DNA of 64,000 bases from Blastocladiella emersonii ATCC 22665 (GCA_025594325.1 JANHCV010000003.1:806001-870000), one strand, 5' to 3'; shown: positions 3,982 through 7,800, counted from the stretch's first letter. Translations and numbers: made by a program. The notes: generated by a model not told the origin, from the sequence alone.

Positions 3982-4178
3982 TACATTTGCTTCATGGGTG
4001 CGGGTTTGAGGGGGAGAGCGAGGACCGCGAAGGTTGGCGGCGCCGAGACCGGACGACGCGCCGACGCGACGCTGCGGGCCGCACGTGGCGCCCTGTCTTG
4101 AGGATTCGACCTCGTCCTCTCTCACAGGTCCCATCGCAACGGCTCTGCGACGACGGCAGGCCGCCCCCACTCTGTGCA

Positions 4179-4698
4179 ATGCTGGCAACCAACGAGACCT
4201 TCAAGCACCTGTCGTCGAGCGAGCTCGAGATCCTGCAGTCCGAGCTCGACTCGCTCGACGCGCGCGCCGTATGTGCTCGCTGCTGCCCGTCGTCTGTTCC
4301 CGACGAAGCGTAACCGTGTTTGATGGGTGTCTAGCGCGTGTACCAGCGGCGCGTCGGAAACTCGAACGTGCTGTTTCTGACGAACCGCCTGTCGCTCGAC
4401 AAGACCGTCGACGGTACCCTCACCCCTCCACGCTGCCGGATCGGTACCCGTTGTTGATCCCGCGCATTCTGTAGAGACGCTCCGCACGATGCTGGTCGAC
4501 GCGCCGGTGCCACCACCGTTCGCCACGCTCGCGTCCTCCAAGACCACCGCCGAGCAGCCGATCAAGGCGGCCACAGCCTCGGCCCAGCCAGCGCCTGCTC
4601 CCGCCCCCGCTTCCCCTGCAACCAAGACCCAGCCCCAGCCCAAGACGAGCCCGAGCAAAAAGGGCAAGGGCAAGGGCAAGCGCGGCGGCCGGAGGTAA
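4179..4698 (+). CDS. ASDURF: Small spliced prefoldin-like protein resembling ASDURF (PAQosome subunit), about 130 aa
   Basis: Exons 4179-4268, 4335-4413 and 4475-4698, joined across GT..AG introns of 66 and 61 nt, give MLATNETFKHLSSSELEILQSELDSLDARARVYQRRVGNSNVLFLTNRLSLDKTVDETLRTML followed by a P/A/K-rich tail. The core matches my recollection of human ASDURF ([26 protein letters not shown]). Confidence 0.7.
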
Positions 4699-4812
4699 TC
4701 CTGTGCTGGATAGAATACATGAGTCACCTGAGTGATCGGCGCGCGCCGTGAGCCGTCCCACGAAGCCGAGCGCGTCGCCGCTCGCGGTCCCCTGAACACA
4801 CCGACCCGAACC

Positions 4813-7800
4813 ATGGCACGCCGGAAACCCGCTCCGCCGCCGCGACCTGCTGCAACGTCGTCGTCCGACTCGGACTCGGACTCGGACTCGGACCACAATG
4901 ACCGCGCCGCGCCCGCGCCCGCCGCGCCGGCGGCCCCCGAGGTCCCCGAGATGACCAAGAACATCATCCTGATCTTCGGCGAGGCCCAGAAGACCAAGGC
5001 CGGCCACCGCAAGCTGTGCAACGTGCTGCGCAAGCTGCACCTCGAGGCCATCAACGACGGCCGCGAGCCCGACTTCATGCGGCCCTTTGTCGCGTGCCTG
5101 ACCCGCACCCTCGCCACCAAGCAGCGCGCCCCCGCCGTCGAGCGCATCCTCGACTTTGTCCAGAGCTTCATCGCCTTCTCGCGCGACAAGGACCGCGCCC
5201 TCGCCCGCAAGGCTCGTGGTGGGGCTACACCCGCGCGCCAGCAGCAGCCCGTCCTCACGCTTGGCGAGCCCGACGCGCCCGCGCCTGCCGACGAGGACGA
5301 CGAGGACGACTTTATCTCGACCCAGTTTGCCGTCTGGGTCATCAACTTCCTCCTCCGCGGCATCGCCGCCCGCGATAAGATCGTGCGCTACCGCTGCGCC
5401 CGCCTCATCTTCATGATCGCCTCGCACCTCACCGCCATCGAGTACGCCTTGAATCCTTGAGTGTCATGGTGAGACTCGGCTAACCCCGTGTGCTGCGTAG
5501 CGACGACCTCTTCGAGTCCATGAAGCGCGAGCTGTACGCGCGGTGCCGAGACAAGGAGCCCATGGTGCGCCGCGAGGTGGTCGCTGCCCTGGCCATCCTG
5601 CAGGGCGGCGAGTCGGACGGCGACACGGACACGGTGCAGCAGAAGCTGATCGAGCTGATCCAGTTCGACCCGTCGCCCGCCGTGCGCAAGTCAGCGCTCA
5701 ACCACATTGCCCCGAGCAACGCGACCATCGCCGCCATCATCTCGCGGTGCCGCGACGAGGACCCGGCCATCCGCCGCGCCGTCCACCGCGTCCTCGCCAC
5801 CCACATCCCGTCGTTCGAGCAGCTGAGCTCGGCGCTCCTCTCCAGCATCACCACCAGCGGCCTGCGCGACCCCGACGAGGGCGTCCGCAAGTCATGCGTC
5901 GACCTAATCCTCGGCTGGGTCGGCGGGTCGCCCGTCCAGCTCGCCAAGCTGCTCGCCCGCCTCAACGTCGTCAAGAACCAGGTCGCCGAGCTGATCGCCG
6001 TGCAGTGCCTCCGCGGGCCCAAGGCCGGCCACGGGATCCGCCTGCTCTTCACCTTCGACTCGTGGCGCAACCTCACCCCCGAGACGGCCCTCATGATGCG
6101 GTGCTACACGCAGCTCCTCATGGACGAGGCCGCCAAGGGCAACGTGGCGGTGCCCGTGCCGCGCGGCGCCGGCGGCAACGACGAGGACCAGTTTACGCCG
6201 CTCGACGAGATCTTCATCATCGAGCACCTCGCCTACTACGTGCAGCTGCACACCAACCACATGATCACCAACGCCGACGAGTCGCTCGACGCCGCCTACA
6301 TCTACGTGGTCCAGGAGCTGCTCACGCTGTGCTGCATGGCCGACTACGGCGACCCGCACGGCCGCCGCCTCATGTTCGCGCTCGTCCGCAACATGATCAG
6401 CTCCATCGCCGTCCCCGAGGAGCTCATCCCGCCGCTCATCGACCTCCTGCGCCTGCTGTGCGTCGACGAGCGCGACTTCATCCGCGTTGTGCACGAGATC
6501 ATCGTCGACACCGCCGACACCCCCGTGGTCCCGCAGCCGGGCGACGACGGGTACAACGAGGCCGAGCCGAGCCACATGGACCCCGAGGAGGACATGCTGT
6601 TCCGGCACCTCAAGTGCCTGATCATCCTGCGCAAAACGCTCGAGGCCACGCCGCTGCCGTGGACCGCCGACGCCCTGATCCCGATGCACGGGCTCGTCGC
6701 CGAGCTCGTGGCCCCCGCGCCCGACCGGTACCCGGGCATCGGCGTCGTCATCGCCAACGCCATCGGGTGCCTCGGCCTCATCAGCCTGACGTCGCGCCCG
6801 CACGCGATCCGCCACGCCGCCCAGGTCCTCGCCTACGCGTCGATCCCCGCCGTCGACCGCGCCTCGGACGAGGACCTCGCCGAGGTCGTCATCGTCTCCC
6901 TGCGCGCCCTGTTTGACCTCGTCCTCCTCTACGGCACGGACCTCCTCGGCCTCAACAAGGACCAGGTCGCCGCGACCTTCGCCGCGGCGCTCGCGGACCC
7001 GGTGCGGCCCATTGCCGCGCTCGCCGTGCAGGGGTGCGTGAAACTCATGCTCGCGAACCGGCTGCGGTCCGCCGACCTCCTCGCGGCGCTGTACCACCTG
7101 CACTTCACGCAGGCGTGGGCCGCGGTCCCCGAGATCCGCGACTGCCTCGACTTCTTCGCCGAGACGTACCCGACGATCCTCGAGAACAAGCGGCTCGTCG
7201 CGGCCGCGTTCGGCGCGATCCTCGCTGCCGTCCTCGCCGACGGCGTCAAGGGGAAGGCGTTCACGACCGTCGGCGACACGCTCGTCAAGTACCTCGACGA
7301 CGACGGCGAGGGCACCGCGCTCCGCCTCGCCGCCGCCGCCAAGATGCTCGAGGCCGACGAAGGCGAGCTCCCGCTCAAGCCCGCGCTCCAGCTCCTCGCC
7401 AAGTGGTCGCTCAACCAGGGCGGGCGTGTGCCCGCGGACCGGCTGCGTAAGGTCCAGCGCCTCGTCAACGAGATCCCCGACGACGCGCTTGATAACGTCG
7501 GCCGCAACGCCCTCAAGAAGGTCAACAAGGCGCTCGTCGACCTGAGCCCCATGGCCGAGGAGGACGAGGATGCAGCCGAAGAGGAGGCGGACGAGGAGGC
7601 GCCCAAGGAGGAGGAGGACGAGGAAGATGTCGAGGAGGAGGAAGCGGAGCCCGAGGCACCCGCCGCCGCCGCCCCCGCTGCCGCCGCGACCGAGCCGTCG
7701 GACGACGAGGAGGAGCCGATGGAGGGCGTCGAGCAGGCTGGTGCCGCGGCCAAGCGCGACGACGACGAGGAGTCCGAGCCAGAACCTGCCCCGCGCCGCC

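Follow-up and report, generated by a model that had tools for sequence, protein, structure and literature searches.

Sequence comparison and structure modelling indicate that the first ~65 residues of a 130-residue protein of the early-diverging flagellated fungus Blastocladiella emersonii (KAI9184068.1) very likely form a small beta-class prefoldin-like domain, which would represent a highly divergent orthologue of ASDURF (ASNSD1-SEP). In humans, ASDURF has been described as subunit six of the prefoldin-like (PFDL) module of the PAQosome; it is a PFDL subunit in Arabidopsis too, where the orthologue AT1G49245 co-purifies with UXT, whereas budding yeast has URI/Bud27 only and is described as lacking the PFDL module (PMC10893143, PMC8567396, bioRxiv 10.1101/2023.12.13.571423). 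The literature that could be searched contained no mention of a fungal ASDURF. The gene is located on the plus strand at positions 4179-4698 of the window, by which we denote the whole 64,000-nucleotide stretch analysed (G000:C15:806001-870000), in a genome (G000) of 32.65 Mb, 21 contigs and approximately 70% G+C. The assembly used here amounts to 32,654,225 bases in 21 contigs, as opposed to 34.27 Mb in 21 contigs given in the genome paper (PMC9730499), a discrepancy for which we have no explanation.

The gene comprises three exons, and GT-AG splicing at the predicted junctions 4268/4335 and 4413/4475 yields the 130-residue product, denoted P0001. Exon 1 (4179-4268, plus strand, 30 codons) begins with the first in-frame ATG, found at 4179 in both the sequence and the list of open reading frames (ORFs), and encodes residues 1-30 with the N-terminal helix of the putative prefoldin-like domain. 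Intron 1 (4269-4334, plus strand, 66 nt, phase 0, GTATGT..TAG) contains an in-frame TAA at 4311-4313 and ends in an in-frame TAG at 4332-4334. Exon 2 (4335-4413, plus strand, 79 nt) encodes the predicted beta-hairpin VY..VGNSN..LFL..R and the start of the C-terminal helix, and is separated by intron 2 (4414-4474, plus strand, 61 nt, phase 1, GTACCC..TAG), which divides one codon as g|ag, from exon 3 (4475-4698, plus strand). The latter encodes the end of the C-terminal helix, a P/A/S/T-rich tail of ~55 residues and the basic motif KGKGKGKR, with the stop codon at 4696-4698. The translated pieces are 30 residues (4179-4268), 26 residues (4335-4412) and 73 residues plus stop (4477-4698), and both introns carry a TTGAT branch-like motif 14-20 nt upstream of the AG. 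When all GT..AG intron pairs were tested by brute force, exactly one pair, with the junctions given above, produced P0001; hence the clean splicing to 130 residues described in the earlier note was reproduced. Without splicing, the frame runs into the TAA and TAG of intron 1 and meets another stop shortly past exon 2, which is why the ORF list holds the gene solely as fragments, as had also been claimed. Moreover, removal of intron 2 is required for the conserved KGKGKGKR end to be in frame.

The spliced product P0001 has the same sequence as KAI9184068.1, which GenBank lists for B. emersonii strain ATCC 22665 as “hypothetical protein H9P43_003121”. The gene, called hidden in the earlier note, was therefore already annotated, albeit unnamed. 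The B. emersonii annotation was built by funannotate with ab initio predictors, and the searched text of the genome paper (PMC9730499) mentions no transcript data. The deposited model is thus a second prediction and no experimental proof, and its ab initio origin is what favours the view that the gene is non-functional, either a prediction artefact or a pseudogene. This view appears extremely improbable given the composition and the conservation of the coding sequence. The GC content at third codon positions (GC3), read in frame, is 0.97, 0.92 and 0.86 for exons 1, 2 and 3, respectively, compared with 0.94 in two neighbouring genes. For second codon positions the value is 0.35-0.37 in exons 1 and 2, and the introns have a GC content of 0.58-0.62. 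Among the three Allomyces genes described below, dN/dS, computed on exon 1 plus the initial 35 codons of exon 2, was 0.13-0.30. Protein sequence, position of the intron and C-terminal motif are all kept across two genera.

Four proteins were compared: P0001 of B. emersonii, P0002 of Allomyces javanicus and P0003 and P0004 of A. macrogynus. When 1.84 billion representative proteins were scanned by HMMER using residues 1-66 of P0001, the 128-residue P0002 was the sole other protein below E 0.001 (E 1.5e-5, 45% identical residues in the segment 8-60), and the two A. macrogynus copies were added by a profile word search. Word-based searches of protein sequences that took the exon-1 ORF or P0001:1-65 as query returned nothing but P0001 itself, and a metagenome scan with the alignment gave 600 pattern matches, none of them relatives. 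Across the four proteins, 24 columns inside residues 1-59 are invariant. All four genes have three exons, and in each of them intron 1, in phase 0, interrupts the coding sequence at the homologous point, immediately ahead of the “VY” strand. Intron 2 is in phase 1 in all four as well and follows residue 56 in Blastocladiella versus residue 69-70 in Allomyces, i.e. 13-14 residues further. The 5' splice sites of intron 2, GTACCC (window 4414-4419), GTACCA (L016:6082-6087), GTACCA (L021:4082-4087) and GTACAG (L022:4082-4087), differ from GTAAGT/GTATGT, possibly a habit of the lineage that may be relevant to gene prediction in Blastocladiomycota. In a six-frame search of the B. emersonii genome with the profile of the four homologues, the gene proved to be single-copy (exon 1 E 4.9e-8, exon 2 E 2.2e-13). 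Judged from GC3, conservation, the shared intron and purifying selection, all of them sequence-based criteria, the segment 4179-4698 is a genuine single-copy three-exon gene.

The four proteins end in an invariant SK..KGKGKGKR, preceded by a variable P/A/S/T-rich stretch. As far as sequence analysis can tell, only the four Blastocladiomycota proteins found here carry this added tail of ~55 residues, which is predicted to be disordered and ends in the invariant KGKGKGKR. As a guess, the tail might serve nuclear import, or it might bind acidic partners, for instance URI1 through its acidic region.

To assign the protein to a family, we searched 24,736 Pfam families, among which ASDURF is represented by PF21975 (ASNSD1-SEP; 96 positions, curated cut-off 27 bits). 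All scores against this model, 12.8-19.1 bits, were below the cut-off: E 0.13 and 12.8 bits for the whole P0001, E 0.028 and 14.9 bits for P0001:1-66, E 0.019 and 15.5 bits for P0002:1-63, E 0.0054 and 17.3 bits for P0003:1-66, and E 0.0014 and 19.1 bits for P0004:1-70. PF21975 was the sole Pfam match for the three Allomyces proteins, for the whole sequences and the N-terminal domain alike, and the top match for the N-terminal domain of P0001. With the whole P0001, CCDC53 and DEC-1_N weakly outranked PF21975, driven by the low-complexity tail, and both vanished on its removal. The matches are collinear in all four proteins and cover profile positions 32-78 of 96, corresponding to helix, hairpin and helix, with exon 2 as the core; since the proteins are homologues, the four matches count as non-independent. 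The residue pattern which the earlier note had aligned with ASDURF is present in order in P0001 (E15, I18, E22 L23, L26, V32 Y33, N39 S40 N41, F44 L45 and R48), with two of the spacings one residue longer than had been written. Specificity was controlled with pieces of PFD1, PFD2, PFD4, PFD5 and PFD6 proteins from the same genome, which matched Prefoldin_2 or Prefoldin with 14-99 bits and never PF21975. Pfam searches with single exons gave nothing useful, and a six-frame genome scan with PF21975, the control genomes of which were prokaryotic, gave no match because the exons are too short. Sequence searches of the PDB with exon 2, P0001 and a two-sequence profile returned low-complexity or chance matches only, the PDB set seemingly containing no ASDURF or UXT chain.

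Pfam scores below the cut-off, together with direct sequence searches that reach relatives in Allomyces only, would also be expected if the gene were real but encoded a Blastocladiomycota-specific coiled-coil protein with a basic tail (e.g. nuclear or nucleolar) unrelated to ASDURF, the weak matches reflecting a generic helix-hairpin-helix pattern. The KGKGKGKR tail, to our knowledge not a feature of any ASDURF, points in the same direction. On the other hand, a single family out of 24,736 was the sole or top match in four homologues, with a best E of 0.0014 and collinearity over the hairpin core, and neither the canonical prefoldins nor the coiled-coil pieces of the same genome matched PF21975.

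Structure prediction bears on this question as well. The AlphaFold2 model computed on the four-sequence alignment (pLDDT 68.8) consists of a helix at residues 13-26, strands at 30-37 and 40-47 and a helix at 53-65, i.e. the helix, hairpin, helix order of elements of a beta-prefoldin, with helices of ~14 and ~13 residues that are short for a prefoldin tentacle. Fold searches with this model, which revealed no prefoldin above noise, are in line with an unrelated coiled-coil protein: the best E of a Foldseek search against the PDB was 0.42, with an archaeal beta-prefoldin first appearing at rank 48, Z was at most 3.4 in a VIA-align comparison with 48,161 PDB representatives, and an ESM Atlas search by shape listed no prefoldin. 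Being compact and monomeric, the model is probably a poor query for a subunit that adopts an extended form in its complex, which would account for the empty searches. The ESM Atlas provides separate evidence in favour of the ASDURF assignment, since its features and structures, independent of the Pfam profiles, rank ASDURF-like and prefoldin clusters first. With P0004 as a query of the feature search, the two nearest clusters were ASDURF-like, with scores of 0.86 (198 of 256 features shared) and 0.82, both under 0.9 and hence leads only by the standard of the Atlas search; the third-ranked cluster, from plants, carried PF01920 as well as PF21975, and all ten best matches having a family agreed in family or clan. 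By the Atlas structure of P0004, a PFD1 cluster was nearest (TM 0.66, residues 8-62), followed by the Prefoldin_2/ASNSD1-SEP plant cluster (TM 0.63 and 0.53). The feature search with P0001:1-66 gave no usable match. The ASDURF-like identity proposed in the earlier note is therefore supported by PF21975 as top or sole match, by the Atlas clusters and by the modelled helix-hairpin-helix, at profile scores that stay under the cut-off.

If the protein belongs to a PFDL module, genes for its other subunits would be expected in the genome. We sought them by six-frame scans with Prefoldin_2 and Prefoldin, followed by phmmer comparison with the human (6NR8) and yeast (7WU7) prefoldin chains. In this way PFD5 (C15:174849, E 2.4e-29), PFD3 (C1:664535, E 4.3e-21), PFD6 (C1:2907460, E 2.3e-15), PFD2 (C6:350120, E 5e-12) and PFD4 (C17:1411076, E 1.7e-11) were identified. 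A fourth beta-class gene at C18:675543-675909 scored 32.7 bits with Prefoldin_2 and matched no PDB chain; it is presumably PFD1-like, so that the clear beta-class genes of the genome are four (PFD2, PFD4, PFD6 and PFD1-like). A long open frame on C20 (locus L012) matches Prefoldin (53.7 bits), DUF3835 (35.5 bits) and Prefoldin_3, presumably the domain combination of URI1/Bud27, and was assigned to URI1. As a candidate for UXT, L014 (C19:413150) was rejected; it matched Prefoldin weakly, and its ORF presumably codes for a protein of the MSP/VAP type that ends in a coiled coil. A fourth alpha-class gene lies on the minus strand at C18:735064-735174 (L013, ~1348-2114) and consists of four small exons, only one of which reached the Prefoldin cut-off, just exceeding it with 23.7 bits; it is distantly similar to PFD5 and archaeal alpha subunits (E 0.1-0.3). 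Since reviews name only PFD3, PFD5, URI and UXT as alpha-class proteins (PMC10893143, PMC8567396), this gene is UXT-like by elimination. Regarding the R2TP core, the genome contains the metazoan-type RPAP3 C-terminal domain (RPAP3_C) at one locus (C1:505154-505474, 46.7 bits) and PIH1 at three loci above the cut-off (C17:838380-838927, C4:417169-417767 and C4:1282686-1282826). Several PIH1 proteins would also fit flagellated zoospores, as dynein pre-assembly factors.

Thus, of the partners expected for the PAQosome prefoldin-like module that the earlier note suggested for this lineage, URI1, a UXT-like gene, PFD2 and PFD6 were found, along with RPAP3_C and PIH1, and PDRG1 was not. The presence of partner subunits argues further against a lineage-specific coiled-coil protein, which we regard as unlikely. 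The exon-wise six-frame Prefoldin_2 scan of the genome, in which PDRG1 was not found, could easily miss this gene, and PDRG1 may have diverged strongly, may be spread over tiny exons or may have been lost.

With PDRG1 missing from that scan, a beta position in the PFDL hexamer has no gene assigned to it, and PFD1 is the nearest Atlas cluster by structure; both observations would suit a beta-class prefoldin-like protein that is not an orthologue of ASDURF, namely a PDRG1 that has diverged strongly or an additional PFD1-like paralogue. We consider such an identity very unlikely. Prefoldin_2 (PF01920) matched none of the four proteins at an E limit of 10, and the scan of the whole genome with PF01920 did not pick up the locus described here, whereas PFD1, PFD2, PFD4 and PFD6 of the same genome score 32-67 bits with this model, to which human PDRG1 is likewise assigned. 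In addition, the two best Atlas feature matches are ASDURF-like, neither PDRG1 nor PFD1, and the genome already has the PFD1-like gene on C18.

An ASDURF orthologue therefore remains the reading that we favour for the B. emersonii protein, and its presumed role can be outlined from the known module. The hairpin VY..VGNSN..LFL would contribute two strands to the double beta-barrel by which the hexamer is held together, and the two short helices would make up one coiled-coil “tentacle”. Partners in the hexamer would be URI1 and the UXT-like protein of the alpha class and PFD2, PFD6 and probably PDRG1 of the beta class, and the module would act with an RPAP3/PIH1/RUVBL-type R2TP co-chaperone of HSP90 in the assembly of multi-subunit machines.

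In common with ASDURF, the protein is predicted to be a small beta-class prefoldin-like protein with a hairpin between two short helices, is encoded by a multi-exon gene and shares its genome with URI1, PFD2 and PFD6 genes and a UXT-like gene. The human ASDURF ORF comprises 96 codons in four exons and is an upstream ORF (uORF) of ASNSD1 (PMC10187264). In contrast, the B. emersonii gene is stand-alone, as in Arabidopsis, and its product, characterized here at the level of sequence, differs from ASDURF in a short N-terminus and in the disordered tail. The helix, beta-hairpin, helix topology is shared with canonical PFD1 (PF01920), as seen in the Atlas structure of P0004; unlike the canonical beta subunits, of which PFD1-like, PFD2, PFD4 and PFD6 are already encoded in the same genome, the protein lacks similarity to Prefoldin_2 and has far shorter helices. 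It would resemble PDRG1, a PFDN4-related prefoldin-like protein, in being small, of the beta class and part of the PFDL module, and differs from it, as far as can be judged from Pfam and the nearest Atlas clusters, by the missing Prefoldin_2 match and the ASDURF-like neighbours. ASDURF has been proposed to occupy, in alternative complexes, the position that PFDN1 has in canonical prefoldin (bioRxiv 10.1101/2023.12.13.571423).

The gene order in B. emersonii is a divergent upstream gene on the minus strand, the ASDURF-like gene and a condensin CAP-G-like gene, both of the latter on the plus strand. The upstream gene starts with its ATG at 3981-3979, and the 197 nt between the two start codons (3982-4178) presumably hold a divergent promoter and the 5' UTRs. 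On the other side, a spacer of 115 nt (4699-4813, plus strand) leads to the ATG of the CAP-G-like gene at 4814; the N-terminus encoded there (segment 4814-5460) carries an SDSDSDSD run. The three Allomyces loci have the order CHCH (minus), ASDURF-like (plus) and chromo-domain (plus), with 140-222 nt to the next gene. A conserved linkage with condensin was ruled out because in Allomyces a chromo-domain gene follows the ASDURF-like gene. The micro-synteny shared by the Allomyces loci extends over MRP-S28, a beta-eliminating lyase, an unnamed gene, CHCH (minus), ASDURF-like (plus) and chromo-domain (plus) (L016:5458-7772, L021:3465-5789 and L022:3464-5616), and A. macrogynus carries the whole block twice, on two scaffolds. 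The short spacer invites the speculation, quite unlikely in our estimation, that the ASDURF-like and CAP-G-like ORFs share a bicistronic mRNA, echoing human ASDURF-ASNSD1; if so, ASDURF genes would tend toward expression as upstream cistrons. A separate speculation, equally doubtful, is that the KGKGKGKR tail gives the PFDL of Blastocladiomycota a nuclear-targeting or nucleic-acid-binding role absent from animal and plant ASDURF.

The ASDURF family itself is known, and its presence in animals and plants makes an ASDURF in a basal fungus expected rather than surprising; what is new is the extreme divergence of the protein and its conserved disordered basic tail. One GenBank “hypothetical protein” and three Allomyces proteins hereby gain a testable name. 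Furthermore, tiny multi-exon prefoldin-like genes slip past ORF scans and Pfam cut-offs, so the seeming absence of such genes from other fungi deserves re-examination. The PFDL module has so far been studied in humans and, recently, in Arabidopsis, and budding yeast, the usual fungal model, has lost everything in it but URI/Bud27. B. emersonii might provide a fungal system for the study of this module. An early-diverging flagellated fungus with URI1, UXT-like and ASDURF-like genes, RPAP3_C and several PIH1 genes fits a loss of the PFDL module within fungi, not its later gain in animals and plants.
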